Source: Octopus bimaculoides
Taxonomy: Eukaryota
Reading direction: 5' to 3'
DNA length: 50,938 bases
Assembly (NCBI RefSeq): GCF_001194135.2
Contig: NC_068998.1
Coordinates: 31,286,583 to 31,337,520, forward strand
A program made the position numbers and the translations under genes. Below, one piece after another: positions 2,276-47,199 of the stretch (position 1 is its first letter; every line of letters starts with the position of its first letter). The notes below the pieces were generated by a model. That model did not search any database. It was not told where the DNA came from and saw only the letters and a list, made by a program, of their open reading frames with translations.

Positions 2276-4001
2276 CAGAGGATGGGGGTAGGGGTGAGGT
2301 ATGTGGAAGAGGGTGTAAGGGATGGGATGGGAATGATGGGGAAGGTGGGGTAGGAATGTGTAGGAGTGACGTGGGCTTATGTGGGAGGGTTGATGATGAA
2401 GGGGGAATGTGGGTTTGAGAGAAGACAGAAAGAGAGGAAGAGAGAAGAGAGTAGGGGTGAAGAGAAGTAGGAGTCAGAACAAGAGAGGAAGGTGGGTGGG
2501 AGGAAGTAGGAGGAAGGAAAGAGAGGCAAGGGGGAAAGGCAAAGGGAGGAGGTCAGATAAAGAGGGGAGGAGAGTTGAGCCCATGTGATGCAAAGGAGCG
2601 AAGAGAGAAGATTAATCCCTGTTCACGGCGCAAACAGGAGTCCGGATGGCCCATGTGCAAGGACAATCCGAACACAGACAGGTGTTGCAAAGAGTGACTG
2701 GTAGAGCAGAAATGGCGTGAGACCAGGGTGTCATTGCCGAGGCGGATGTCTCGGAGGTGTTCCGCGAACCAGTCAGCCAAGCGGCGTCCCGTTTGTCTGA
2801 TGTACAGAGAATAGCAGAGAGAGCAGGAGATGCAATAGATGATATTAGTAGAAGTGCAGGTGAAGGAGACGGTGGTGTGATAGGGTCGATGATGGGTGCC
2901 GGTGAGGAGGGTGGTGTTGGAGAGGTAAGGGCAAGTGTGGCAACGTGGGCAGGAGCAGGGGAACGAACCAGGTTGGGAGGTTGGGTTAGGGAAGAAGCTG
3001 TGGACCAAGTGGTCTCATAGGTTGTGGGCTCGTTTGAAGGAGGGGAGGGGTGGGTTAGGGAAGATGTGTGAGGTGGATGGGTCGGACTGGAGACGCCGGA
3101 AAGCTTGGACAATGGTGTGTTGGAGAGGTAGGNNNNNNNNNNNNNNNNNNNNNNNNNNNNNNNNNNNNNNNNNNNNNNNNNNNNNNNNNNNNNNNNNNNN
3201 NNNNNNNNNNNNNNNNNNNNNNNNNNNNNNNNNNNNNNNNNNNNNNNNNNNNNNNNNNNNNNNNNNNNNNNNNNNNNNNNNNNNNNNNTGAGGAGATATC
3301 CACGTAGGATGAAGTGGCGAGCCATGAGTTGAGACTGAGTCTCAAAGTCATGGTCATCTCTACAGAGCCTGCATAGACGGAGGAATTGGGAATAGGGGAT
3401 GGAAAGCTTGGTGTGTTTAGGGTGGGAGGAGAAGTTGAGGTATGAGTGTGAGTCTGTATGTTTGTAGTGGATGGAGGTGGTAAGAGTGGAGTGATGAATG
3501 CTGACCGAAATGTCAAGAAAGGAGACAGAGGTGTCAGAGATAGTGCAGGAGAAGTGGAGGGCAGGATGGAAAGATTTGACAAAAGAGAGGAAGGAGTCTA
3601 GATGTTCATGGGAGAGTGAGGTTGCACCGATACAGTCATCAATATAATGGCCATATAGTTCGGGAGTGGGACCAGTGAAACTTGAGAATATTTGGGCCTC
3701 AACGTAGCCAACGAACAGGTTCGCATAGTTGGGGCCCATTCTCGTTCCCATGGCCAATCCCAAGACTTGCTGGTAGAAATCGCCCACGAACGAGTAGTAG
3801 TTGAGTGAGAGGACAAGTTCGGCCAGATGAACGAGCGTAGAAGTGTCAGGTTGGGTCGGAGGTCAAGGAAATGTTTGAGTGCGCGCAGCCCCTCGTGGTG
3901 ATGGATCACCGTGTAAAGGCTCTGGATGTCGAGAGTGAAGAGAAGTTTAGAGGGGCCAGGAACGAAGGAGAAAGAGTTGAACAAACAAAGCACGTGGTGG
4001 G
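2276..4001 (-). mobile_element. Penelope-like retroelement remnant (RT + C-terminal GIY-YIG), frameshifted and gapped
   Basis: PLE RT motifs LFTLDIQSLYT, GLAMGTRMGPNYANLFVG, YIDDCIG, FLDISV; GIY-YIG-like NIIYCISCSLC..LYIRQTGRRLADWFAEH in ORF 2553-3008; purine-rich tract 2276-2550 is the likely 3' UTR. Confidence 0.92.
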
Positions 4002-4483: not shown

Positions 4484-4484
<1 letters not shown>

Positions 4485-6086
4485 TCAAAATAAGCAAAAA
4501 GGATATCCAGAGGTAATGCAGTATGATCATTTCATGCAACTCCAGTTAATTGAACAATGCAATCATTACATCAATTTAAATGCAGAGCAATCCTCAGCTG
4601 CATAGAGACATAGAATTTAATTAAATCAAAACACATTAGTATAATTATACCTAAAATCTCCAGGAAGTTAAGGAATTAGACAAAAAACATGCTGCCTTCA
4701 CTCTAGCATAGAAGCTACTAAGGTATCAAGAAGATATACATTGTTACAGACTCTGCCTGTCACTGATTTTTTGTTTCTATGGGGTCAGTTTTAATTTATA
4801 GACTAGTTTATCAAATCCTTGTATATCTAAGGCCGATCCACTAGAAATATATTCAAAACTACTAGTCATGGCATGAATCTAGGGAGCAGAGATAGTACAA
4901 ATATATCCTGTCCTTATTTACACAAAAAATTTAAAGGTAAGAGTCTCTGGTTCAATATCCCATACAACTGTGTATTATTCACAAACATATATAGAAAATT
5001 TATGGCTATTTTAGAAAAAAACGTCCCTTCTTCCTATAGATATAATAGAATCTTTTTGACAGTTAGAATCTCATACTCTACTCTCCCCAATATAGGTACC
5101 ATCATAGCTAGATTTAATAGGAAGAATATAAAATTAGCCAGAATTGTCGATAATAATAATAATAATAATAATAAGGGGCCCCCACCTGCGAGGTCATGCA
5201 TTGTTTATCTTGATATAAGATCACCATGTTGCGCACATATGGTTGTGATGCATGTGCCCGGTGTACCCTTATCAGATGGGTAGTCATGATGGGTCTATTG
5301 GGCTTCGTATATTTTACCCCAGTGTCACTTTGATGGCATGCACTGCTCTCTCACAACTATAACTTAAACTCCCAAAATGAAAATAGTAGTATTGATGATG
5401 ATGTGGTGAATAGAAGGAATAGTGGTAGCACTTCTAGTAAAAACATTAAGGATTGTAGTTCCAGTACATAACAGGGCATGGAAACTATTAGTATGCTTGA
5501 TGATGCAGAGGCGATTTCATATGATAATACAATTGAAGTGGAGTTAGAAAATAGCAGACATGAACATAACATACTTGATAATAGAATCATTAATAGCGAA
5601 AATATTAACAATAAAAATAAAAATAATAATTTAAATCTTAATAATAATAATAATTCTCCTAGTTGCAATTGTAGAGTTAAATTCCGCTGTCCTTTATTAG
5701 GCCGATGTCTTACCCAGAATGTATTATATAAATGCACAATAAAAACTGCAACTAATAATTATATTTACTTCGGTTGTTTGATTAATTTGAATCAGCATAT
5801 ATACAATCACGTATTGTCCTTTAAACTTAAAGATAAGGCGAATTGTACGCCATTATCCAGTAAGATTTGGGAATTGAAAGAAAGTGGAATTGGGTTTAGC
5901 CTCAAAAGGGAAATAAGAAAAGTTCAGCCTTATAGAAATAGCAGATATGGGTGTGAGATGTGCTCTATGGAAACATATGAAAATTTTAAGCATAAAGATA
6001 ATGGCAACCTGATTAATAATCGATTAGACCTTAGGGTATCATGTGTACATAGTGCCACCCGTACCTTTAAATATTTTAGAAAGTAG
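4484..6086 (+). mobile_element. Penelope-like remnant: degenerate RT end, WFNxPY linker domain, Asn-rich linker, Cys-flanked GIY-YIG endonuclease
   Basis: SLWFNIPYN...RISYSTLPNIGTIIARFN (ORF 4873) and CNCR..CPLLGRCL..NVLY....YIYFG...H....LSSKIWELK...CEMC..E.....LINNR...CVH (ORF 5478) match the PLE C-terminal organisation. Confidence 0.85.
5173..5354 (+). repeat. GC-richer ~182-bp insert (likely 3' tail of another retroelement) interrupting the PLE frame at an (AAT)n run
   Basis: Abrupt composition change after (AAT)n; removing 5173-5354 rejoins the upstream and downstream PLE frames (boundary chosen by eye). Confidence 0.5.
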
Positions 6087-6399
6087 TACTTTATTGATCT
6101 TGTGATTTAAAACCTATAATGTACCTCTTAGTTTATAATCAGTGCATAGGTAGCATGACCTACAGCAATAATTTTCCTTTAGTTAATATTGGGTATCAGT
6201 CATTATAGATACAAGCTAATTAAGTAAATAAACAATTTTTAGTTTTAAATACTTGAATTATTACATACTTTCTATAAATCTTCTCTATTGAAGTTACTAA
6301 GTCGATTTTAGTGATTAAACTATTTTATATCCTTTTCTACCTGATCATTTTAATACTTTATAATTGCCTTTAGATAAACCTAAATTTTTGTACCCCTAT

Positions 6400-7130
6400 A
6401 ATATTAATAATAATAATAATAATAAAATGATCAGTTAGGGTAGAGCACCTTAGAAAAGGAATAAAGACAGCCTAATCACTAAAAACCATAATAAAATATC
6501 CATACCTTTTGTACCCCTATAAAGTCATACTTCGCTTATAAAAACAATATGGGTATCTTCACAACTTAAAATTAAACTGCTTAGATTATAATTTAACTAA
6601 TTTATAGTAAATTTGTTCTCTCACCTCAATGATAATCCTGATAATCCTAAATTTTAACTTTATACAATATGGATATGTTGTTTAAAATAGTTTTAGTAAC
6701 TAAGTTTTTTTATCCCTTTCTTAAAGTGTTCCATCCTAATTTTGGTATTTATATTGGCTTTATACAAGCAGCCCTTCAAATTAAGTACCCCTAAGAAACT
6801 AATATCATTTATGGATTAACACAAATAACTTTTAAAATCTATATTATACCTCTTAATTTAATAGTAGTATATAATTAGCACGTCCTTTTAACAACAATTA
6901 TTCTTTTAACCAATACTAGGTTTCAGTCCTGATTATAAAAAGCTAAATAAGTTAATTAACAATTTTTAGCTCATAATACTTAAATTATTATACATTTTCT
7001 ATAAATTTTTGCTATTGAAGTTAATAAGGCATGGATATTTTATTATGGTTTTAGTGATTAGGCTGTCTTTATTCCTTTTCTAAGGTGCTCTACCCTAACT
7101 GATCATTTTATTATTATTATTATTAATATT
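6400..7130. repeat. ~100-bp near-perfect inverted repeat (6400-6503 / 7031-7130) plus diverged direct repeat (~6118-6350 / ~6843-7110)
   Basis: aaaatgatcagttagggtagagcaccttagaaaaggaataaagacagcctaatcact is reverse-complemented at 7031-7110. Confidence 0.85.
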
Positions 7131-7164
7131 ATTTTTATTATTATTTTATAGTAGTCTTAAATAA

Positions 7165-7853
7165 ATCTAATCGACAATTCTGGCTAATTCTATATTCTTC
7201 CTATTTAATCTAGCTATGATGGTACCTATATTGGGGAGAGTAGAGTATGAGATTCTAACTGTCTTATGTAAAAAGATTCTATTATATCTATAGGAAGAAG
7301 GGATGTTTTTTTCTAAAATAGCCATAAATTTTCTATATATGCTTGTGGATAATGCACAGTTGTATGGGATATTGAACCAGAGATTCTTACCTTTAAATTT
7401 TTTGTGTAAATAAGGACAGGATATATTTGTACTATCTCTGCTCCCTAGATTCATGCCATGACTAGTAGTTTTGTATATATTTCTAGTGGATTGGCCTTAG
7501 ATATACAAGGATTTGATAAACTAGTCTATAAATTAAAACTGACCCCATAAAAGCAAAAAAATCTGTGACAGGCAGAGTATATAACAATGTATATCTTCTT
7601 GATACCTTAGTAGCTTCTATACTGGAGTGAATGCAGCATGTTCTTTGTCTATCTCCTTAAATTCTTGGAGATTTTAGGTACAATTATACTAATGTGTCCA
7701 TCTGTTTTGATTTAATTAAATTCTATGTCTTTGTGCAGCTGAGGATTGCTCTACATTTAAAATGATGTAATGATTGCATTGATCAATTAAATGGAGTTGC
7801 ATGAAATGATCGTACTGCATTACCTCTGGATATCCTTGTTGATTATTTTGATT
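7165..7853 (-). mobile_element. Inverted second copy of PLE segment 4484-5150
   Basis: ORF 7167-7454 (-) nearly identical to ORF 4873 (+); homology extends to ggatatcc..ttattttgat near 7830-7853. Confidence 0.9.
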
Positions 7854-7948
7854 TTAATCACCTACTTTGAAATTGTATGGATAATACCGTACTAAATTCT
7901 GGTGCCTCAACTTAAGTACCATATTCATCTGAATCTATATATATATAT

Positions 7949-7981
<33 letters not shown>

Positions 7982-10900
7982 GTTTAACGTCCGCTTTCCA
8001 TGCTAGCAGGGGTTGGATGATTTGACTGAGGACTGGTGAACCAGATGGCTACACCAGGCTCCAATCTAATTTGGCAGAGCTAATACTGCTGGATGTCCTT
8101 CCGAACGCCAACTACTCCAAGAGTGTAGTGGGTGCTTTGACGTGCCATCGGTACAAAGGCCAGTCAGGCAGTACGTGTCACCTGCACAGGAGCCAGTCCA
8201 GCGGCACTAGCAACGATCGTGCTTGAATGTCTTTACACTTGCCGCGGGCACAAGTGCCAGGAAGGCGATGCTGGGCACAGCTGCCATTACGATTTCGGTT
8301 TTGCTTACCCCAATAAGTCTTCGCAAGTTGAGTTTCGTGTCCAATGAAGGAGACGACGTTGGCACGGGTGCCAGTCGTCGAATTTAGTTCGATTTCACTT
8401 GCCTCAACAAGTCTTCGCAAGCGGGGTTTAATGTCCAATGTAGGAAAGGTACGCATAAGTGGGCTGGCTACACCCCTGGCAGAGACCTTGGGATATAGGT
8501 CTCACTTGGCTTGCTGGGTCTTCTCACGCACAGCATATTTCCAAAGGTCTCGGTCAGAAGTCATCGCCTCGGTGAGGCCCAATGTTCGAAGGTTGTGCCT
8601 CACCACCTCATCCCAGGTCTTCCTGGGCCTACCTCTTCCACAGGTTCCCTCAACTGCTAGGGTGTGGCACTTTTTCACACAGCTATCCTCATCCATTCTC
8701 GCCACATGACCATACCAGCGCAATCGTCTCTCTTGCACACCACAACTGATGCTTCTTAGGTTCAACTTTTCTCTCAAGGTACTTATACTCTGTCTAGTAT
8801 GTACACTGACATTACACATCCATTGGAGCATACTGGCTCTGTTTCTTGTGAGCTTACGCATGTCCTCAGCTGTCACGGCCCATGTTTCACTGTCATGAAG
8901 CATGGCTGTTCGTACACATGTGTCATACAGTCTGCCTTTTACTCTGAGTGAGAGGCCCCTTGTCACCAGCAGAGGTAAGAGCTCTTTGAACTTTGCCCAG
9001 GCTATTCTTATTCTAGAAGCTACACTTTCAGTGCACCTTCCCCCCCACTACTAACTTGGTCACCTAGATAGCGAAAGCTATTAACTAAGTCTAGTTTTTC
9101 TCCCTTGAATGTGGCCAAAGTTGTTTTCAGCACATTTTCAGTGTTAATTGCTCCTGAACATCAGCGATATACAAAAACTAACTTCCTAGTTAACCTGCCT
9201 TTGATATTGCTGCACCTCTTATGCATCCATAGCTTGCACTGGGCACATCTTATAGAGTTTCTACCTACGCCTTTTCTACAGATCGAACAGGGCCATCTAC
9301 CTGAAGGGGTTTGTGTGTTGTCTACCTTCCTACTTATTAGGACTTTGGTTTTAGCTAGGTTGACTCTAAGGCTCTCCGATTCTAGTCCCTGCTTCCACAC
9401 CTGAAACTTCTCCTCTAGTTTTGATAGTGACTCAGCAATTAGTGCAAGGTCATCAGCATAGAGGAGATCCCAGGGGCATCCTGTCTGGAATTCCTCTGTT
9501 ATCGCCTGGAGGACTATGATAGATAGGAGGGGGTTGAGGACTGAACCTTGGTGGACTCCTACCTCTACCTGGAATTCTTCACTGTACTCGTTGCCAAGCC
9601 TCAACTTACTGACAGCATCTCACACAGCTCTCACTAACCATTCTTCTATCCCTAGTTTCTTCATTGACCACCAGATAAGGGAGCGGGGGACCCTGTCAAA
9701 GGCTTTCTCCATGTCAACCAAAGTCAGGTACAGAGGTTTATCTTTGGCTAGGTATTTCTCCTGCAGCTGTCTTACCAGAAATATAGCATCAGTGGTGCTT
9801 TTCCCTGGCACAAACCCAAACTGCATCTCATCTAAACTGACTCTCTCCCTAATTAGTTGGGCTATGACCCTCTCCGTGACTTTCACTACCTGATCTAACA
9901 ACTTGATACTTCTGTAATTATTTGTATCTAAAGTGTCACCTTTACCTTCATAGCAGTTGACTATGGTGCTGCTACACCAGTCATTGGGTATAACTTTTTC
10001 ATGTATCACCTGGTTAACAATACGGATGACTAGGCTATAGCCGACACTGCCAGATATTTTGAGCATCTCTGCAGCGATTTCTGATGGGCCGGGGGCTTTC
10101 CTTGTCTTCATACTCTTAATTGCTTTATCTACCATGGTACTGTCAACTCAGATAGCTGGTCCCTCTGTTGGGTCAACGTTTAGCAGACTCTCTTTCTCCC
10201 ATTCACTCTCTTTATTGAGCAATCTTTTGTAGTGGTGTCTCCAAACCTCGTTTAGTGCAAGCGTATCATCATCCATGTGAACACATTTCTTTCCCACGAC
10301 ATCATAATTCTCTCTCACACACTGTCTTGCAACACAAAATACCTCAAGTCTTTGGTCCTCACGGCACAAAACATTGGCCAATTTTTTCTTATCTGCTTCC
10401 CCTCTGGCTAAATAAACCTGTCACTTAGCTTCCCTTCTGGCAGTCTGATATAATTCCTTGCTACCACCGTTCTTCCAGTCCTTCGAAGCCTGTTTCTTTT
10501 GTCTAATAGCCCTGTCAACAACATTGTTCCACCACCACGTTATTTTGGGTCAAGAGGGGACTTTGCACCATCCACAGATCTGGTCAGTGGCCCTCAGCAG
10601 GTTGTCCCGTAGAAACGTCCAGTTGTCTTCTACATCATGTGAAGCTACATCCCCCTCTATTTTGTCAAAGGCTTNNNNNNNNNNNNNNNNNNNNNNNNNN
10701 NNNNNNNNNNNNNNNNNNNNNNNNNNNNNNNNNNNNNNNNNNNNNNNNNNNNNNNNNNNNNNNNNNNNNNNNNNNNNNNNNNNNNNNNNNNNNNNNNNNN
10801 NNNNNNNNNNNNNNNNNNNNNNNNNNNNNNNNNNNNNNNNNNNNNNNNNNNNNNNNNNNNNNNNNNNNNNNNNNNNNNNNNNNNNNNNNNNNNNNNNNNN

Positions 10901-13081: not shown

Positions 13082-14176
13082 CTGAGGGTGGACCTGGTGC
13101 ACAGTCACCCACCCCACCCTAAACTAACCATTCCTAATTTTTTTTTCACTGGATTCCTATGTTTTCAATTATGAAGATTTTTTTTCAATCTACATAGAAA
13201 AATATGGAGGTTAAGAATATGGGAGAAAAAAATTTAATTTCAAATTTTTTATGGAAAACTCCAAAATTGATCCACTCCCCATCCTGCTGTCTAAAAGTGA
13301 AAAAAACCCCAGCTGTTTTGTCCATTTCCACATGTATAGATTTATAGTGAATCAAAGAATAAAAAATTTAGAATGGTACAACAATGCACTATAGAACAAA
13401 AAATGGACTATATACCTGTTGTATTTTGGTTATCTATATCCAATGATATTTCGGAATTACAATTCCATCTTCAGATCTTCTTAGCTGACTCCAGTGCATT
13501 GTTGTACCATTCTAAATTTTTTATTCTTTATAAACAATACACAATGCTTCAAGCGAACTACAATACTCTCTTATAGTGAATCAGGAAAAGGACCATGGCA
13601 TGTGAAACCCTCACCACGAAACTTTGATATACTAAAAATGACAGCTAAATGTCTGGAGAAATTTTGTGATTATCTGTGCGCATGCGTGCAACAATTTCTA
13701 CAGCTTATCCAAATGAACAGAGAAAGAAGTACACAGAAATATATTTTACATACCTGTCATATACATCAATTTCGTTTTTTCGCTTTAAAGGTAAACGATT
13801 CTGATAGAAGCAATTACCTTGCTGTCAATTCATTGGATTAATTCCAACAAAATACAAGTTTAGTCACTGGCTCAGCACCTATGTTTGTGTCCTTCATTCC
13901 AAAGTAATAAAAACCTTAACATACTTCCAGAATAGGACTTCATCCATGTGTATCCACGTGTATATATGTGCATGTGTGTATGAAGAAATAAATTAAAAAA
14001 AAAAAGTTAAAAATTAAAAATTTGAAGGGGTGGAGGGAATAAAAAATTTTGAAAATGTGTTTTTTTTTTTGCATATTCGAAATCTCTGTCATTAAAAACA
14101 TAGGAATCTGATGAAAAAAAATCAGAAAGGTAAGTTTGTGGGAGGGGGCGACTGTGCACTAGGTCTGCCAACCTGA
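13082..14176. mobile_element. Non-autonomous DNA transposon with ~90-bp imperfect TIRs
   Basis: Left ggacctggtgcacagtcaccc...ggattcctatgtttt matches reverse complement of right aaaaacataggaatc...ggcgactgtgcactaggtc; no coding capacity inside. Confidence 0.7.
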
Positions 14177-19329: not shown

Positions 19330-22300
19330 AGCATGTCAAACACTTCTGACTAATTCTGATCAAATCGTGCATTTTTTTGTAAGGGACCATGTGTCTGGAA
19401 AAGCGTTTATGGTTGACACAGGTTCTAGTTGCTCTATTTGGCCTTTGAGTTTCGCTACAGACAAGCCAAAGTGTTCAGAGATCACCTTGCATGCGGTCAA
19501 TTGGTCTCCCATTGCAACTTACAGTCAAGTTTCCTTACATATTGACATTAATCTTCATCGGGATTTTAGGTGGATTTTTGTCATATCTGATCTCCCACAT
19601 CCTATTCTGGGTGCGGACTTTTTGAACAATTTTAACCTATTGGTCAGGCGACAGAGACTTGTCGATGGTTCTGTGTCTTTTTCTACACCTGCAAAGGCCA
19701 CTACCAATGCTGTTCTCAGTCCTTCATTTTTTGTTGCCACTGCTGGTGATGCATTTCATTCACACTTAGCTTCTTTCCCAGAGCTGGTGGATCAGCGATA
19801 CCAAACGGCAAAACCTACTCACTCGACCCTCCACTATATTACCACCACTGGGTCACCTGTCTTTTCATGCCTGCGGTGACTTGCTCAAGAAGGCTAAGTC
19901 TGAGTTTGAGCACATGCTCCAGCTTGGCCTTATTCACCCCTCCACCAGCCGCTGGGCATCTCCCCTTCATTTGGCACGGAAAGGAGATTATGATTTTCGC
20001 CCAGTGGTGGATTATAGGCATTTGAATACGGTCACTGTTCCTGATCGCTACCCTATAAGACATCTTCAGGATTTCTCCTCTAATTTGCATGGTTATACCA
20101 TTTTTTCTAAGGTCAACCTCGTTCGTGCCTATCACCAAATACCAGTCAATCCTGAGGATGTACCAAAAACTGCTATCACTACTCCTTTTGGCAGCTTCGA
20201 ATTCCTTTTTATGAGTTTCGGTTTGTGGAACGCCACAAGCATGTTCCAATGTTTTACCGATGAAGTTGTCCGTGGACTTGATTTTGTTTTCACTTACGTT
20301 GATGACATACTCATTGCAAGCGACACGCGTGAGAATCACCTCCAACACTTAAATCAACTCTTTCAGTGTCTTCGCGCCTACAGTGTGCGAATCAACCCTG
20401 ATAAGTGTATTTTCGGGCAGATCTCTCTGGAATTTCTGGGGCATTATATCGACTCAAATGGTATCAGACCTCTCTCTTCCAAAGTTGAGGCAATTCAGCG
20501 CATCGCATCCCCCACTTCATTATGCCAGTTTTGGGGGATAGTCAACTTCTACTGACACTTTATTTGTGATTGTGTAGACAAGTTACTTCCTTTGACTCAG
20601 CTATTGAAAACAAATACAAAAAAAGAATTCTCCCATTACTTTATCTGCTGAGGCATTATCTGCTTTTGAGTCAATCAAGAAGAAAATAGCTTCTGTTCCT
20701 TTGCTTGCACATCCGGTTCCCGATGTTCCTCTCTCTTTAACTGTTGATGCATTGGATTCTGTTTTGCAGCACACCGTAGACAATCAGACTAAACCTTTGG
20801 TGTTTTTTTCTCATCAATTAAAGCCAGCCGAACGTCAGTACAGTACTTTTGACCGCGAGCTCTTTGCGATTTACCTGTCAGTTCGTCATTTTCAATATCA
20901 ACTCGAAGGCCGAAATTTTGTGGTTTATACTGATCCCAAGTCTCTTATCTTTGCTCTGTCTTCTAAATCGGACAGACACTCGCCTTGTGCTTTTCATCAT
21001 CTGGACTACATTTTGCAGTTCACGAGTGACATTCAGCACTTACCTGGAACAGAGAACATGCCTGCTGACGCACTTTCTTGTCTTTCTGTGTGCTCTCTTT
21101 CATTCCTTGCTGCAATCGATTTAACCGCCATTGCGTAGGATCAGTCAGCTCTAGACACTTTGGATTTAGCTTCTAACAAGTTATCCTGTTGCAAGTTTGC
21201 CTATCTTCCACTTCCGTCTGCTGAAGACACCATTCTTTGTGACACAACTACTGGTTCTCCCAGGCCGTTTGTACCTGAGAACCACCAGCACTCTGTGTTT
21301 GATGCCTTGCATTCAGTGTCACATCCTGGCATCGCTGCCTCAGTGAAGCTTATTACGGCTTGGTTTCTCTGGCTCAATATGCATTGGATGATCACCGATT
21401 GGGCATGTAAAATGCCAGTGTTCTAAAATCCACAGGTATATTCATGCTCCTCTTGGACAGTTTTCTTCTCTGGAGACTCGCTTTTGCCATGTCCACATTA
21501 ATCTGGTTGGACCATGGCCTGTCAGTCGCGGTTTCTCTTACATATTGACATGCGTCAATCGATTCTCTTGTTGGCCAGAGGCCATTCCGATAGTGGACAT
21601 TTCTGCTGAGTCAGTTGCTTGAGCTTTCATTTCTAATTGGATTACTCGCTTTGTGTCCCAGCTAAGATAACCACTGATTGTAGATGCCAGTTCGAGGCTT
21701 CTCTATTTCGTGAATTGTCATGAATCCTAGGTGTTCATCACATTCGTACGACCAGCTACCACCCAGCCTGCAATGGGATGGTCGAACGTCTTCACAGGCA
21801 ACTGAAGGCTGCTCTATGTGCCACTCCTGATCCGCAGTCTTGGACAGAATTCCTGCCTATTGTTCTTCTTGGTTGTTGCACTGCTGTTAAAACAGATTTA
21901 GGTTTCTTATCTGCTGAACTCCTTTACAGTACCATCCTGGCACTTCCTGGTACAATGTTAGTGCCAGACAACTCATCACCTCCTGATCCAATGTCGTATG
22001 TCACCAGACTTCGCTCGTATTTCTCAAGTCTTTCACCCTTGCATCCACATGACCAGTCCATTTCCTTTCACATCCCACTGGATATTGACAAATGGACTCA
22101 TGTTTTTGTTGAGGATGATTCTGTCAGAGGACCTCTCATTTCTCCTTATAAGGGACCATTTCGTGTATTATCGCGCACGCCCAAAACTTTTAGTCTCGAC
22201 ATCAATGGTCGAGCAGTGACTGTGCCGGTCAACAGACTTAAAAGGGCATATTTTGAGGTGTCCACACCCTTCGATGATGCCCTAAACACACCCACATTTG

Positions 22301-22443
22301 ATCCTTTACAACTACCTACACAACCACCATCACTTATACCTCCATCTTCGTCACCACTACCTAATACGAACAAACCTTGTGTCATCAGGACAGGCCGTAC
22401 TGTGCATTGGCCCAAAAAACTCACTAAAACTATTTATATCTGA
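19330..22443 (+). pseudogene. Gypsy pol (PR-RT-RH-IN) with multiple stops and frameshifts
   Basis: Domain order across ORFs 19367, 19881, 20701, 21160, 21778. Confidence 0.9.
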
Positions 22444-28914: not shown

Positions 28915-31865
28915 ACATCATCATCATCATCATACATCTGTTTTACATGCTGGCATAGGTTGGACAGTTTGACTGGGGTATGGGAAGCCAGGAGGCTGTA
29001 CCAGTCTGATCTGGCAGTGTTTCTACAGCTGGATGCCCTTCCTAATGCCAACCACTCAAAGAGTGTAGTGGGTGTTTTTTTCGTGCCACCAGCACAGGGA
29101 CCAGAGAGAGCTGGCATCGACCACGATCAGATGGAACTTTTTACGTGCCACTGGCATGGGAGCCAGTCAGGGCAGGGCTGGCATCGGCCACGTTCGGATA
29201 GTGCTTTTTATGTGCCTCTGGCACAGGGACCAAACTACAATTTCCATTTGATTTTGATTTTGATGTACTTGACTCAATAGGTCTCCTCAAGCATGGCATG
29301 TTACCCTACGATCCAAGGTACTTTTTGAGTGGGCTGGTTATGTGACACTGGTGTAGGTTACAGCTGTGAGCTCACTTTATTTGCCAGATCTTCTCAGTCA
29401 CAGCATATCTTCAGAGGTCTCAGTCTTTCGTCATTGCCTCTGTGAGGCCCAACGTTCAAGGATCATGCTTCACCACCTCATCCCATGTCTTCCTGGGTTT
29501 CCCTCTATCCTGGATTCCTTTCACTGTTTCGGAGTGGCACTTTTTCACACAGCTCTCCTCATCCATCCATATTACATGACCATACCAACGCAAACGTCTC
29601 TCTTGCATGCCACATCCAATGCCTCTTATGTTGAACATTTCTCTCAGGGCGCTTACACTCTGTCATGTGTGCACACTGACATTACACATCCAGTGGATCA
29701 TGCCAGCTTCATTTCTTTCGAGCCTACGCATGTCTTCAGCAGTCACGGCCCATGTTTCAATGCTGTGAAGCATGGCAGTTCACATACACGCATTGTATGA
29801 GCGAGAGGCCCTTTGTCACCAGTAGGGGTAGAAGCTTTCTGAACTTTGCCCAGGCTATTCTTATTCTAGTGGTAACACTGTCTGAGCATCCACCCCCACT
29901 ACAGACTTGTAGTGGAAGCTATCAACTACTTCTAGTTTCTCCCCCTGGCATGTGATGGAATCTGTTTTCTGAGTATCTGTGGTGTTTATTGCCTTTGTGC
30001 ATCTGCCGCACATGAAAGCTATCTTCCCGGTTAATCTTCCTTTGATGTTGCTGCACCTCTTATGTGTCCATAGCTTACACTGGGTACATCTTATGGAGTT
30101 TCTACCTACACTTTTTCTACAGATCGAGCAGGGTCACCTACCTGAAAGGGTGTGTGATGTGTTCACCTTCCTACTCGCTAGAACTTTGATCTTTGTGACA
30201 TTGACTCTAAGGCCCTTTGATTCTAAACCTTGCTTCTACACCTGAAATTTCTTCTCTAGTTCTGGTAGTGATTCTCCTATGAGGGCCAGGTTATCAGCAT
30301 AGAGGAGCTCTCAGGGGCAACCCATCTTGAATTCCTGTGTTATTGCCAAGAGGACTATGAAGAATAAGAGGGGGGGGGGCTGAGGGCTGATCCTTGGTGG
30401 ACCCCGACTTCTACCTGGAATTCTTCACTGTACTCATTGCCAACCCTAACCTTACTAATGGCATCTCTGTATAGGGCCTGTACAGCCCTTATTAACCATT
30501 TGTCAATCCCCAGTTTCTGCATCGCTCACCAGATAAGGGATCGGGGGGACCCTGTCAAAGGCTTTCTCCAAGTTCACAAAAGTCAAGTATAGGGGTTTAT
30601 CTTTGGCTAGGTATTTCTCCTGCAATTGCCGTACCAGGGATATAGCATCAGTGGTGCTTCTACCTGGCACAAAGCCAAACTGCATCTCATCTAAGCAGAC
30701 TCTCTCCTTAATTAGTTGGAATATGACCCCCTCTGTGACTTTCATCACCTGATTCAGCAGTTTGATACCCCTGTAGTTATTTCTATCTAGAGCATCACCT
30801 TTACTCTTATAGCAGTTGACTATGGTGCTACTATGCCAGTCATTGGGTATGATTCCATCATGAACTACCTGGTTTACAATCCGGGTGACTAGGCCATAGC
30901 CCACACCACCAGATGTTTTAAACATCTCATCAGTGATTCTTGATGGGCCGGGGGCTTTTCCTGGTTTCATACCCTTAATTGCTTTATCTACCAGGTTATC
31001 TATTCAGATAGCTAGTCCCTCTACTGGGTCAACATTTGGCAGACTCTCCTCCTTCCATTCATTCTCTACGTTCAGTAGTCTTTCATAATGGCTTCTCCAA
31101 ACGTCTTTCCTTTCTGAATCATTAAAAGCAAGTGCACCATCATCCATGCAGACACATTTCTCTCCTGTAACATCGCAATTTTCTCTCACACACTGTCTGG
31201 CAATCTGAAATACTTCAATTCTTTGGTCCTCATGTCACTGGACATTGGCAAACTTCTTCTTTTCTGCTTCTCCCTTGACTGTGTATACCTGTTGCCCAGC
31301 CTCCCTCCTGGCTATCTGGTACATTTCCCTGATACCTCCACTCTTTCAGACTTTCTGGGCCTGTTTTTATGCTCTAATGGCTTTATCTACCACCACGTTT
31401 ATCCACCACTTTACTCTAGGTCTGAAAGGGACTTTGCACACTTCCACAGACTTGGTCTGTGGCACTCAGTAAGCTGTCCCGTAGGAATTTCTAGCTACCT
31501 TCTATGTCCGAGGTCTGTAGCTCCTCCACCCTGTCATCAAATTTCTTGATGAGGATGTCCCTAAATCACTGACCAGGGTTCTTTAGCTTCCAAATCCTTC
31601 TTTTCTGGATTGGTCTGCTTCTTGGCATCCTTCTGGCTTCAAGTCTAAAGTCACTAATGACTAGTCTATGCTGAAGGGTACATTCTTCACCTGGGAGGGT
31701 CTTTGTATTTAAGAGCAACCCTGTGTCCCACTGTCTGGTGAGGATGAAATCAATCTGGCTAGCAGAGTCACCTGATTGATAGGTTATCAAGTGGCTGTCT
31801 GGCTTCCTGAAGTTAGTGTTGCAGATTAAAAGGTTACATGCATCACAGAACTCTAGCTGCAAAGA
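28915..31865 (-). mobile_element. RTE LINE (family of 7952-11810), 5'-truncated within APE
   Basis: ICNTNFRKP..HLITY..QIDFIL..CTLQHRLV (APE); GKAPGPS, NYRGIKLL, LEKAFDRV (RT); RLRWYGHV; 3' UTR and (GAT)n tail. Confidence 0.9.
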
Positions 31866-36647: not shown

Positions 36648-37522
36648 CGAGGTGACATCAGAAGGTTCCTGGACTAGTTATGTTTAATAAAGATTAACTT
36701 ATTTACCTAAGTTTTAACATCATCTCCTTTGAAATAGTCACCATGCACAGTAATATACCAGTCCCAGCATTCCTGCCACTTCTGGAATCTGGTCTGGAAG
36801 TTATTTTCTGTAGGCAAGTCAAGGACCTTCTGTGATTCACTCTGGATCATGGCAACAGTGTTAAAATGGAAACCTTTGAGTTGCATTTTCATCTTGGGGA
36901 AAAGATGGAAGTCTACAGGTGCTAAATCTGGTGAATAAGGTTGGTGCAGAAGTAATACCATGTTGCTTTTGATGAGACACTCACAAGTAAGGAGAGCTTG
37001 GTGACAAGGTGCATTTTCATTGGTCAGTTTTGCCAAAAGTCCTCCCTCAAAATGCCACAGTACAACTCTTGGCCCTGGGAGGCGAATTCTTGATGCACAA
37101 TACCACATTCCCAGGAGTGACACTTGTGGAAGGTCTTCCAGATCACTCATTGTCTTCCAGAGATATTCTTCCACTTTTGAAGTGTCTGTGCCACTCAAAA
37201 TATTGCGTACAACCCATTGCTTTATCTCTGTAAGCATGCCGAAGCATGCCCAGTGTGTCTGTAGCAGGCTTTCCAAGTTTAATGCAAAATTTCTTGTTGG
37301 CTCTTTGTTCCTGTCCAAAAAAACAAAACAAAAAAACAAACAAAAATACAAACAAACAAAAAAAAACCCACAATTTTCACAACTTGCAAAGTAAGCTCAG
37401 TGATGTCATTTGGTACACTGCCTCATGAAAGTCACTGCTAGCTTTCACAGCACACACAACCATGTGCTGCCATCTGTTAGTGTGCTACAGAACTAGTCTG
37501 GGAACTTTTTGATACTACTTCT
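36648..37522 (-). mobile_element. Internally deleted mariner with ~33-bp TIRs and TA flanks
   Basis: Left cgaggtgacatcagaaggttcctggactagtt versus right aactagtctgggaactttttgatactacttct; N-terminal KFCIKLGKPATDTLGML and C-terminal QPYSPDLAPVDFHLFPKMK..LKG, with the centre missing. Confidence 0.9.
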
Positions 37523-42924: not shown

Positions 42925-44445
42925 GATGACTGTCCACTCATGACTGAGGAAGACCATTGCTGACCTTTAAGAACATTGTGTGCTCTAGGAGTAACTTATA
43001 TTTTGCATTTGTGGCTCCGTTGGTGGCTAATGAGCCCTGCTCTTGACAAGCATACATGACTGCAAACATTGCAAACCAAGCTTTCCCCATTCATTACACT
43101 AGCAGTGTGCTTTCAAGTAGCAGGCTTAAATTCTTCATGCAGAATGTGTGCTCTCTCTATCACAGGCCTTTAGTGAGGACTTGACATAGTCCTTAAATAG
43201 CAGCCTTGGTTTCTACCAGGGTCTCTTTCCACTAAGAAGTTCCCCATATAGCATCTGTTTAGAGGTCCTGCTATCCTTCATTCTAATAAGGTGTCCAGTC
43301 CAATGTAACCAGTGCTCGTGCTCCATCGCCTCAATACTCAAGATATCAGGTTTCCTCAGGACCTGTGTGTCGGAGTTCTTAAGGTCCAGCCAACATTCAG
43401 AATGTGACTCAGACATCTCTGATGAAAGCGTTCAAAGACCTTTACATGACGTTTGTAAAAGGTTCGTGTCTCACATGAGTAAAGGAGTGATGTCAGCACA
43501 CATGCATGGTACACAGCAATTTTTGTTTGCCTTGTGATGCCATGCTGGGACCAGACATGAGACTGAAGAAACTAGAAGGAATCAGTTGCTTTCGCAGCCT
43601 GAAAAATATTTCCTCATTCAAGGAGCAAGAATGGCTAAGTGTGCTGCCTAGGTAGACAAATTTGTCTACCACTTTCAGTATTGTTCCTTTAACCAAGATA
43701 GCTTTATACAGTCATCTGTATAAAGAAGGTCATGAATAAGAGACTGAAAAGCTTTTGAACTGGCAGCAAATTGGCACAGATTAAAGAGGCAACCAGAAGA
43801 TTGATACCTGACATATATTCCCAGAGAGCTGACCTTAGCAAAAGTATGAGTAAAAGCAGCAGCAAAGTACAAAGAAAAGAGAGTTGGGGCAAAGATATCA
43901 CCCTTCTTGACACCATTCTCTACAGGAATGGGTCCCGCCATGCCACCACCAACACTGACCCAAGCCTCTATCCCATCATGAAATGATTTAATTATAGAAA
44001 TAAAGTAATTCAGACATCCAAGTTTGCCAAGTATTTTCCATAGCAAGGCCCTAGTCACAGTATCAAAGGCCTTGGTTAAATCAATGAATACCTGGACAAG
44101 ATCCGTATTCTGTTCATAGCACTTCTCTTGCATCTGTCTTGCTGTGAAAATCATATCCATTGTCCCTCTACCAGATCGGAAGCCACATTGAGATTCAGAT
44201 AGGACATTATTTATGAGACACTCATTCAGGTGGGTAAGAAGAATATTTGCCAGAACCTTGCCAGCAGCTGATAGTAGAGCAATACCTCTGTAGTTACTAG
44301 ACATTATTCTGGCTCCTTTTCCTGTATAGAGAGAAAGAATAATTGCATCCTTCCAGTCTTTAGGCACTGCACCATCCCTCCAGACTATACTAATAAGTTC
44401 ATGAAGGGACTGTGTGATGTAATCACCACCAAATTGCAAGACCTC
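42925..44445 (-). mobile_element. RTE/BovB-like LINE remnant
   Basis: DWKDAIILSLY.GKG..SSNYRGIALLSAAGK, SQCGFRSGRGTMDMIFTARQMQEKC, GVKKGDIFAPTLFSLYF, LLYTDD, QMLYGEL, C-terminal CNVC..VCLSRAGLISH. Confidence 0.92.
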
Positions 44446-44451
44446 AGTACA

Positions 44452-45817
44452 AATTCAGGTATTATTTGATTGTTTCACTCATTCAATTTTGACTAAGAAA
44501 AAAAAAAAAAGGATTTTTTGCATGGAATCAAGCACCCTGACCTCCTAATATACTGCAAACTCCTTATTTTTGTTCGTAAAAAAAGGAGGTGGGGGAAACT
44601 GGATCCCATATCCCATAATCATTGTAAATGAATAAATGAAAATGCAGAGGTTATAGAAATTAGAGTGGTACTGAAGCCAGTGGAGAGATAACGAATGATA
44701 NNNNNNNNNNNNNNNNNNNNNNNNNNNNNNNNNNNNNNNNNNNNNNNNNNNNNNNNNNNNNNNNNNNNNNNNNNNNNNNNNNNNNNNNNNNNNNNNNNNN
44801 NNNNNNNNNNNNNNNNNNNNNNNNNNNNNNNNNNNNNNNNNNNNNNNNNNNNNNNNNNNNNNNNNNNNNNNNNNNNNNNNNNNNNNNNNNNNNNNNNNNN
44901 NNNNNNNNNNNNNNNNNNNNNNNNNNNNNNNNNNNNNNNNNNNNNNNNNNNNNNNNNNNNNNNNNNNNNNNNNNNNNNNNNNNNNNNNNNNNNNNNNNNN
45001 NNNNNNNNNNNNNNNNNNNNNNNNNNNNNNNNNNNNNNNNNNNNNNNNNNNNNNNNNNNNNNNNNNNNNNNNNNNNNNNNNNNNNNNNNNNNNNNNNNNN
45101 NNNNNNNNNNNNNNNNNNNNNNNNNNNNNNNNNNNNNNNNNNNNNNNNNNNNNNNNNNNNNNNNNNNNNNNNNNNNNNNNNNNNNNNNNNNNNNNNNNNN
45201 NNNNNNNNNNNNNNNNNNNNNNNNNNNNNNNNNNNNNNNNNNNNNNNNNNNNNNNNNNNNNNNNNNNNNNNNNNNNNNNNNNNNNNNNNNNNNNNNNNNN
45301 NNNNNNNNNNNNNNNNNNNNNNNNNNNNNNNNNNNNNNNNNNNNNNNNNNNNNNNNNNNNNNNNNNNNNNNNNNNNNNNNNNNNNNNNNNNNNNNNNNNN
45401 NNNNNNNNNNNNNNNNNNNNNNNNNNNNNNNNNNNNNNNNNNNNNNNNNNNNNNNNNNNNNNNNNNNNNNNNNNNNNNNNNNNNNNNNNNNNNNNNNNNN
45501 NNNNNNNNNNNNNNNNNNNNNNNNNNNNNNNNNNNNNNNNNNNNNNNNNNNNNNNNNNNNNNNNNNNNNNNNNNNNNNNNNNNNNNNNNNNNNNNAGGAG
45601 GTCACCAGAATTCATTCAATGAAAAAAAGAAAATTTTCAATCATTCCAGGATGTGGGGATGGGGGTCTGGTTTCCCCCACCCCACTATTTTTCCAAACAA
45701 AAATAAAGAGTTTGCAGCATATTAGGAGGTCAGGGTGCGTGATTCCAGGCAAAAAATTCGAGTTTTTTTTTCTTAGTGAAAATTGTGCAGGTGAAATGAT
45801 CAAAATTTACCCAAATT
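44452..45817. mobile_element. DNA element with ~165-bp imperfect TIRs spanning a gap
   Basis: ggaatca.gcaccctgacctcctaatat.ctgcaaactc.ttatttttgtt at ~44524 is reverse-complemented at ~45700-45750; homology extends to both ends. Confidence 0.8.
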
Positions 45818-46251: not shown

Positions 46252-46726
46252 GGTGAGACGAGTAACAGAAAGATGTCAATTACGGAGGAAAAGTTTCTAA
46301 AATAGCGTGTGACCGTGCTGTTAGATGTAACAGACAGCTCAGGCAGCTGTGCTTGTGTCCACGTGGGGTATTCAAAATTAGCGTGCATGTATAGCTTGAG
46401 AAATGGCATCGAAGTTTATGAAGAAAGACAAAATGGTGATGAGCTGCATGGTGTAGCAATTCATGTGTGCAAGAGAAAAAAAAAGAATATTTGGCTATTT
46501 TCAAAAAAAATAAAATTAATCTTTTTAGCCCGAATTGGCTACAAAAACAAAAGTGAATTATTGTTTTGGGTGTTGACATCCTAGCAACAGATTGTTCGTA
46601 TATGAAAATGTGTTGGTGTAAGTGTGGTGTGTTTGTAAATAACTTTGGTGTGGTTTCCTTAATAACACGCAGTTTTCTTTAAACAAGGCGTCCGACAAAC
46701 CACTATATATATATATATATATATAT

Positions 46727-47064
46727 AATTTGAAGATAAGCAACAAAAATTCAATAGGTTATAGCAGTACGTACGTTTCGTACAAGCTCCATTTATTCAT
46801 GTAGTGAGAACACTACTTAGAATGTAGAATGAAAATGTACTGTTGAACAGCAGCATAGTCAAGATGATATGTTTTCTTCTCCTACTCTTGTTTTTTGCAC
46901 ATATCTACAAAGTGACTTTCTAAAATGAAATTCCATTATGCAGCTGAGGAGTACATTTTCATTCTACATTCTAAGTAGTGTTCTCACTACATGAATAAAT
47001 GGAGCTTGTACGAAACGTACGTACTACTATAACCTATTGAATTTTTGTTGCTTAACTTCAAATT
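46727..47064. repeat. Fold-back element: 115-bp arms (46727-46841 / 46950-47064, 2 mismatches), 108-bp spacer
   Basis: Base-by-base reverse-complement comparison. Confidence 0.95.
46937..47031 (+). ncRNA. Type I hammerhead-like ribozyme with extended (51-nt insert) stem II
   Basis: UAUGCAG-CUGAGGA-GUACA[51 nt]UGUAC-GAA-AC GUAC GU-A-CUAC(U)AUA; every core nucleotide is canonical. Confidence 0.7.
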
Positions 47065-47199
47065 TTATTCACCAAATCTCTTGATTTTGTTTTTGGTTTT
47101 TACCCTACCAAATTCTGGTGCCTCAAACNNNNNNNNNNNNNNNNNNNNNNNNNNNNNNNNNNNNNNNNNNNNNNNNNNNNNNNNNNATATATATGGGAG

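Follow-up and report, generated by a model that had tools for sequence, protein, structure and literature searches.

A segment at positions 46937-47031 of the window (the whole 50,938-nucleotide stretch of Octopus bimaculoides DNA analyzed here, a gapped scaffold with 11 N runs) had been read as a hammerhead ribozyme with a large structured insert in stem II, which raises the question whether it is a genuine ribozyme motif and, if so, what brought it to this locus. Over 4666 nt, the window matches chromosome record CM046618.1 of GCA_001194135.2 (locus L009) at 100%, an accession that PMC10700109 assigns to O. bimaculoides. We conclude that this copy, referred to as c1, is a decayed hammerhead motif of a Hydra-clade Penelope-like retrotransposon (PLE), at whose 3' end such motifs are located. 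Checked against the sequence, the core given in the initial annotation (CUGAGGA, GAAA and GUA in hammerhead order) is exact to the base in its coordinates, and the same check reproduced both the GUACA/UGUAC strands closing 51 nt around a perfect inner hairpin and the 8-nt palindrome proposed as stem III (Table 1). The topology is that of a type I hammerhead, with helix I open and helix III not forming a hairpin. For stem I, the strands GCAG and CUAC are present as described, but the accompanying claim that a CUGC on the opposite arm restores the pair fails, since that CUGC sits on the other strand and cannot restore a helix I pair in an RNA. Helix I of c1 counts 2+1 pairs only, and A47026 is a derived mutation, because the left arm of the surrounding inverted repeat and every other copy carry G at this position.

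Table 1 Features of the hammerhead copies and of the host element in the window
Feature	Positions	Strand	Basis or remark
c1, helix I 5' strand GCAG	46940-46943	+	Read off the sequence; homologous copies have GUGCAG or AUGCAG against CUGCAU
c1, core C3-A9, CUGAGGA	46944-46950	+	Only N7 varies in six aligned sequences
c1, helix II domain, 61 nt	46951-47011	+	Closure GUACA/UGUAC (G10.1-C11.1), internal loops, apical hairpin 46975-46990
c1, helix II closure strands	GUACA 46951-46955, UGUAC 47007-47011	+	Read off the sequence
c1, helix II interior, 51 nt	46956-47006	+	Contains GUAGUG-uucu-CACUAC at 46975-46990
c1, core G12-A13-A14	47012-47014	+	Same in every copy; GAAA = 47012-47015
c1, helix III, 8-nt palindrome ACGUACGU (A15.1...U16.1)	47015-47022	+	Pairs only between two copies
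c1, predicted cleavage site, A17 (47023) / C1.1 (47024)	47023-47024	+	GUA then C in five of five octopus copies
c1, helix I 3' strand CUAC	47024-47027	+	C·A mismatch at A47026; CUGC in the left arm and in every other copy
c2: GUGCAG CUGAGGA [57 nt] GAAA UGAUCGU A CUGCAU	7733-7820	+	blastn, descriptor scan
c3: AUGCAG CUGAGGA [57 nt] GAAA UGAUCAU A CUGCAU	4516-4603	-	blastn, descriptor scan
Degenerate C-terminal PLE ORF remnant, two frames	4873-5283 and 5478-6086	+	Motifs read in translation
Direct, 5'-truncated copy of the element's 3' end	46939-47128	+	Aligns with 7720-7932 and with L001 7779-7985
Extra 3' tail of the direct copy	47069-47128	+	Runs into N gap 47129-47186
Inverted, 5'-truncated copy, without tail	46729-46852	-	Repeat and alignment analysis
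(TA)12 target microsatellite, left flank	46704-46727		Beyond the gap, TA repeats continue from 47187

Covariance models and thermodynamic folding do not point to a hammerhead at this position. No Rfam hammerhead match was obtained in the window, neither at the gathering threshold nor at E ≤ 10. The Rfam model Hammerhead_1 (RF00163) likewise gave no alignment to the octopus copies, whereas it aligned a canonical relative from another animal (locus L007) end to end, at 15 bits against a threshold of 34; because this canonical relative is itself sub-threshold, the Rfam test is weak for the Hydra clade. The c1 region folds no better than shuffled sequences (z = -0.63). When c1 was constrained to the hammerhead fold, as the initial annotation had envisaged, the structure reached -12.7 kcal/mol, compared with -19.7 kcal/mol for the minimum free energy fold, and across the copies the hammerhead is never the minimum free energy structure, lying 3-7 kcal/mol above it. 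That unconstrained folding misses the hammerhead is expected, because the motif is devoid of a monomeric helix III. From an automatic alignment, RNAalifold predicts a different hairpin that is common to five copies and holds GAAA in its loop. In this hairpin (47007-47027 and homologous positions), helix II contributes its 3' strand, which pairs with the region of helix III and of the helix I 3' strand; such a predicted structure could represent an alternative, inactive conformer. Taken alone, the Rfam, shuffle and free-energy results could allow the c1 motif to be dismissed.

The comparison of homologous copies leads to a different assessment. Scanning both strands of the window with a structural descriptor yielded three hammerhead motifs with an 8-nt palindromic stem III, and blastn within the window identified diverged copies, approximately 72% identical to c1, at 7739-7814 (+) and 4597-4522 (-), within the motifs designated c2 and c3. 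Family matches obtained via blastn and nhmmer extend over 7722-7932 (+), 4614-4485 (-) and 46860-46723 (-). Among proteins, P0003 is most closely related to the adjacent ORF and maps to a locus of Octopus sinensis (L001), in which family matches are located at 7779-7985 (+), 3731-3586 (-) and 3027-3193 (+). This locus harbors one full copy, Os1, at 7803-7868 (+), reading UUUUGG CUGAUGA [47 nt] GAAA CAAUUGU A CUGAAC, and a second, Os2, at 3707-3629 (-), whose helix II measures 60 nt and whose palindrome is disrupted at a single base, besides a truncated copy with helix III cut down to ACGU. The comparative sample accordingly comprises five full copies only, from three subfamilies; loci L010 and L011 are degenerate and uninformative, and the sequences of L002 and L003 are not long enough to include the motif.

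The 11 fixed core bases, together with A15.1 and U16.1, are without exception the same in one outgroup and in each of the five octopus copies, and the flanks of the copies are about 72% identical or unalignable. Variation within the core is confined to N7 (G/U) among octopus copies and to H17 (A/C), the latter only once the outgroup is added. The hammerhead consensus leaves precisely N7 and H17 free. The conservation of CUGANGA/GAAA in homologous copies, to which the initial annotation had tied the motif, holds in five out of five octopus copies. In the helix II closure, G10.1-C11.1 occurs only in subfamily A (c1), and c2 and c3 have U·U at 10.1/11.1. The motif could also be a mere coincidence, in which CUGANGA, GAAA and short stretches of complementarity happen to meet within repetitive, AT-rich DNA; in favor of this, the individual motifs are short and two other weak descriptor matches are present in the window, at 43563 and 13474. 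Against the three palindromic motifs observed, however, stands a mean chance expectation of 0.005 per window, determined in 200 locally shuffled windows, and conservation of the motif, accompanied by compensatory change, extends over subfamilies and species, leaving chance co-occurrence as a reading of almost negligible probability.

Covariation was analyzed in an alignment of six rows (the five octopus copies and one outgroup hammerhead), anchored on the motif itself and comprising both strands of helix I, the core, the six outermost bases of either helix II strand, and helix III. In this six-row, motif-anchored alignment, standard pairs occupy 87.8% of cells on the hammerhead structure, compared with 23-46% in a control with partners slid by 1-3 columns. 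Changes on both sides were found in 13 of 15 pairs, and none of 500 shuffles reached the observed values. Stem I, the base of helix II and the helix III palindrome co-vary by compensatory change. Homologous copies and covariation thus favor the hammerhead of the initial annotation, with a conserved core and co-varying helices.

The variants of the palindrome among the copies, ACGUACGU, AUGAUCAU, AUGAUCGU and ACAAUUGU, differ by paired substitutions that include the two central positions. In a monomer hairpin, these central positions would be located in the loop, and their co-variation is explained only if two copies pair with each other. Self-duplexes of the palindromes have energies of -6.4 to -9.8 kcal/mol, with -9.8 kcal/mol for ACGUACGU of c1, and cofolding of c2 with c3 places the palindrome helix between the two strands. 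A tandem sense pair that could dimerize in cis was not seen, the neighboring copy being inverted at all loci seen. The assignment to type I hammerheads with a palindromic, dimer-type stem III is hence backed by homologous copies and by covariation.

The coding remnant in the window identifies the element from which these copies derive. Both of its frames are absent from protein records, and protein look-ups retrieved few relatives on record. Motifs in the remnant comprise a WFNxPY region, a CNCRVKFRC linker, GIY-YIG, CxxC and CxH, with CCHH being absent; the frame at 5478-6086 translates into CNCRVKFRC, NVLYKC...YIYFG, CEMC and CVH. Full-length relatives of approximately 720 aa contain RT-like YRDDG and FLD, followed by WFNPPY, CxCX5C, GIY-YIG, CxxC and CxH, and the full-length homologs P0010 and P0112 additionally show RWK/RWP and DKS/DKT along with YRDDG, the window copies being 5'-truncated. 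Pfam returned a weak GIY-YIG match, on homolog P0079 only. A CxCX5C linker, GIY-YIG, insertion into (TA)n and hammerheads reported as universal characterize the Hydra clade (PMC8557442), and since the CxCX5C, GIY-YIG, CxxC and CxH motifs are clade-diagnostic, we assign the ORF remnant to this clade. P0003 bears the public name 'myelin gene regulatory factor-like A', an apparent misannotation; its sequence (L001 6001-7308) corresponds to the linker and GIY-YIG part of a PLE ORF with low-complexity N-rich stretches.

Locus L001 further reveals the orientation of the motif. On one strand, it presents in order the ORF (6001-7308), the hammerhead (7803-7868), a terminal block ...TTCTGGTGCCTC... and then (TA)n, so that the hammerhead is sense and located approximately 150-190 nt from the 3' end of the element. 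An antisense placement relative to the ORF, as suggested by the left arm at 4484-5160, was considered and is only apparent, because L001 and L007 both show the sense order of ORF, hammerhead and (TA)n; the upstream hammerhead copy at 4484-5160 is therefore the usual inverted partner. With a same-strand ORF carrying the clade motifs in L001 and insertion into (TA)n, the association with a Penelope element made in the initial annotation is borne out. Together, these comparisons suggest that c1 is very probably a sense-strand hammerhead copy from the 3' untranslated or pseudo-LTR region of an octopus Hydra-clade PLE, with a helix II that has expanded within the lineage into an irregular arm of 47-61 nt.

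We also analyzed the architecture of the insertion. c1 lies in the right arm of an inverted repeat (46723-46852 / 46939-47068) with 130-nt arms that are 94% complementary and 86 nt apart. The inverted copy breaks off inside helix II, with CUGUUCAACA in place of GCAGCUGAGGA; as CUGUUCAACA is found where the 5' core belongs, the left arm is without a hammerhead. Inverted copies in the window end with ...TTGCTTATYTT beside (TA)n, and direct copies extend at least 60 nt further (some 70-80 nt in the case of c2), reaching ...GGTGCCTCAA... and then (TA)n. All loci combine a direct copy with an adjoining inverted one that is 5'-truncated, and only one side bears the tail. An inverted partner with a one-sided tail is the published structure of PLE insertions (PMC8557442, PMC11167929), and the one-sided tail has been explained by two internal reverse-transcription start sites (PMC11167929). 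The c1 locus shows this structure in miniature, as a 5'-truncated, inverted-plus-direct insertion into a (TA)n microsatellite, very probably produced by target-primed reverse transcription.

The whole fold-back unit folds at -202.6 kcal/mol. This value and the high complementarity of its arms could indicate that the fold-back itself matters, either as a long hairpin RNA serving as small-RNA precursor or as a MITE/foldback DNA transposon, with the hammerhead bases being incidental, and sub-threshold matches to the long miRNA-precursor models MIR4208 (58 bits) and MIR7502 (49 bits) point in the same direction. The gathering scores of 140 (MIR4208) and 71 (MIR7502) are, however, far above these matches, the same inverted-plus-direct architecture flanks coding copies, and the motif is conserved in copies outside fold-backs (L001 7803-7868). 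Moreover, the arms are asymmetric, with a tail on one side only, and share homology with an RT/GIY-YIG element, namely with its 3' end. We consider an independent role of the fold-back highly improbable. The specific candidates were rejected: matches to miRNA precursors (MIR4208, MIR7502 and mir-627) are sub-threshold and reflect the long hairpin only, and a MITE/foldback DNA transposon is inconsistent with asymmetric arms that are homologous to a retroelement 3' end. Being a hammerhead copy within a PLE insertion, c1 is affected by the fold-back in another way, since read-through RNA would form the very stable hairpin, with which the c1 hammerhead fold could not compete. The mismatch in stem I, the 5'-truncated insertion and the burial in a 130-bp fold-back make it most likely that c1 is an inactive relic at this locus, which in terms of annotation is a dead retroelement fragment rather than a gene.

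A larger inverted repeat is present at 4484-5160 / 7161-7852, with arms of ~680 nt that are 92-97% complementary and 2 kb apart, each including a hammerhead copy and the first ~290 nt of the ORF remnant. The junction of a reverse-complemented 3' end with an ORF fragment occurs here twice, as mirror images, which exceeds the usual inverted-partner structure. The mirror arrangement at 4484-7852 could stem from retrotransposition of an opposite-strand RNA of a composite insertion, from palindromic duplication or from misassembly.

Canonical hammerheads were located in Hydra-clade loci of other animals, at 4101-4144 in L004, 3998-4034 in L005 and L006, and 4164-4207 in L007 and L008. They combine a helix II of 17-23 nt with a helix III of 9-10 nt and a GUC triplet. 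Hydra-clade elements described by Craig et al. 2021 (PMC8557442) share with the octopus element the GIY-YIG and CxCX5C motifs, the (TA)n target and the inverted 5'-truncated partner. In L004, L005 and L007, the hammerhead occupies the same strand and place, 3' of the ORF and tens to ~190 nt from the element end; Hydra-clade hammerheads are also of type I, with a helix III that is self-complementary or nearly so. By virtue of this shared position, the octopus motif is a positional homologue of the known Hydra-clade hammerheads with an inflated helix II. Besides the length of helix II, octopus copies differ from L004, L005 and L007 in H17, which is A instead of C, and in helix III, an exact 8-nt palindrome as opposed to near-palindromes.

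The minimal, dimeric hammerheads of metazoan PLEs (Cervera & de la Peña 2014, PMC4209133) likewise lack a stable monomeric helix III, contain palindromic 15.x/16.x positions that imply a two-copy active form, feature a helix I of 4-6 bp and reside in retroelement terminal repeats. The double hammerhead of the newt satellite (Forster et al. 1988, via PMC4209133) shares the palindromic two-copy design and the short helix I. In published PLE motifs (PMC4209133), A9 is often followed by an additional base, and G10.1-C11.1 is strongly conserved; among the copies studied here, only c1 has G10.1-C11.1. Metazoan non-LTR retrozymes (Cervera & de la Peña 2020, PMC7229834; Li et al. 2026, preprint 10.64898/2026.07.22.740005) are similarly short, non-coding derivatives of PLE ends with type I hammerheads, but they form tandem direct repeats giving rise to circular RNAs, whereas the loci analyzed here are inverted-plus-direct truncated insertions. 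Repeat search and blastn in the window yielded no tandem direct repeats of a short hammerhead unit as in retrozymes, only inverted partners being found.

The region between A9 and G12 distinguishes the octopus copies most clearly, spanning 47-61 nt against the 17-23 nt of the relatives in other animals (L004, L005 and L007), so the description of stem II as unusually expanded and structured was apt. The view that PLE hammerheads typically have a short stem II was not: it is reported as larger than usual, at 6-8 bp (PMC4209133). This is also what 'long helix II' denotes in the searched PLE-hammerhead literature, and the octopus arm is several times longer. Folded alone, the helix II region of c1 forms one arm at -15.1 kcal/mol (z = -2.96). 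One irregular arm closing beside the core was predicted in four of the five copies, and the minimum free energy fold of Os1 contains an apical hairpin only. z-scores of the arm amount to -3.0, -2.0, -1.0, -2.1 and -4.6 for the five copies, and both its sequence and its internal register differ between subfamilies. According to these predictions, the octopus helix II arm is structured.

A regulatory or tertiary-contact role of the insert, as raised in the initial annotation, is pure speculation; minimal PLE hammerheads have been reported to be without loop-mediated tertiary contacts between helices I and II (PMC6155905). We entertain, with considerable doubt, that the arm may be under selection, as a switch or as a docking site for RT/endonuclease, and would couple dimer-dependent self-cleavage to retrotransposition. 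An example of such a switch would be the alternative hairpin burying GAAA. A helix II arm of 47-61 nt, present in at least two octopus species and missed by Rfam models, was not found in the searched literature. PLE hammerheads as such, the dimer-based layout and the occurrence in the Hydra clade have all been published, and what is unusual in octopus is the length of the helix II arm.

By analogy with the ribozyme class, two sense copies would pair via the palindrome into an extended helix III, resulting in a double hammerhead, in which each core would cut the strand it belongs to directly after A17, with a 2',3'-cyclic phosphate and a 5'-OH as the resulting ends. Cleavage might then trim element transcripts. 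Dimeric precedents exist in the newt satellite, avocado sunblotch viroid and PLE motifs (PMC4209133, PMC6155905), and processing of tandem transcripts has been proposed as the role of PLE hammerheads (PMC4209133). Instead, the motif might be a conserved 3'-UTR element that derives from a hammerhead, no longer cleaves and is kept for recognition of RNA or DNA by the RT/endonuclease; the long arm and the palindrome would then be protein-binding features, for example in internal initiation of reverse transcription. Room for such an element is left by the U·U at 10.1/11.1 in c2 and c3, the weak helix I of c1, the free-energy order, in which thermodynamic predictions favor other folds, the RNAalifold hairpin and the lack of a tandem pair. 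Literature data are in line with this: published minimal PLE hammerheads cleave poorly in vitro (PMC4209133), and in the sole element tested, of the Poseidon clade in Anolis, ribozyme mutants still insert normally in vitro, with reverse transcription starting at defined internal sites near the 3' end (PMC11167929). On the other hand, the invariant positions are exactly the catalytic ones, with core variation limited to N7 and H17, helices I and II co-vary as a hammerhead demands, and canonical hammerheads occupy the same position in relatives. A non-cleaving recognition element is therefore, in our estimate, distinctly unlikely, and we favor a hammerhead family with dimeric design of which c1 is a decayed member.

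Other features of the window and of related loci were recorded alongside. At 13474-13445 (-), a compact sequence resembling a minimal hammerhead (CUGAAGA, an unpaired U, a 14-nt helix II arm (GGAAUUGUAAUUCC), GAAA, the palindrome AUAU and C) occupies the loop between the arms of a small inverted repeat (13494-13530 / 13353-13389); shuffles yield ~0.09 motifs of this type per window by chance. An ORF fragment at 2553-3787 (-), interrupted by N gaps, reads ...CSCPRCHTCP...NIIYCISC...YIRQTGRRLADWFAEH... and, judged by these residues, looks like the Zn-finger linker and GIY-YIG of a different, canonical-type PLE; Pfam gave no match for it at E ≤ 0.001. In L008, a perfect small fold-back at 4749-4812 carries a different minimal hammerhead, CUGAUGA AGGUC UAA GACC GAAA CGU U, within a region rich in (TA)n, for which Rfam gives only a sub-threshold miRNA-like hairpin. 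It shows that these elements commonly give rise to hammerhead fold-backs as by-products. The window is almost wholly transposon-derived. Pfam RVT_1 matches are located at 9623-10147 (-), 19770-20552 (+) and 43678-44454 (-), and reading of translations identified a further RT fragment, of LINE type (30506-31003, -), the pol of an LTR retrotransposon (~19331-22440, +) and remnants of mariner-like transposases (267-674, +; 36710-37396, -). Several copies of a short repeat, whose translation reads ...LDALPNANHSESV..., are also present.

Since standard descriptors and Rfam models miss the octopus class, ribozyme counts in cephalopods, and perhaps in other groups, are probably underestimates. The presence of hammerheads in PLEs is a standing puzzle, as they are almost universal and yet dispensable for in vitro insertion in the one element tested. 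The octopus lineage keeps the core, helix I and the dimerizing palindrome, with helix II inflated two- to three-fold, and thereby shows which parts are constrained. The octopus variant thus provides a natural comparison of hammerheads with and without an insert within one element clade.
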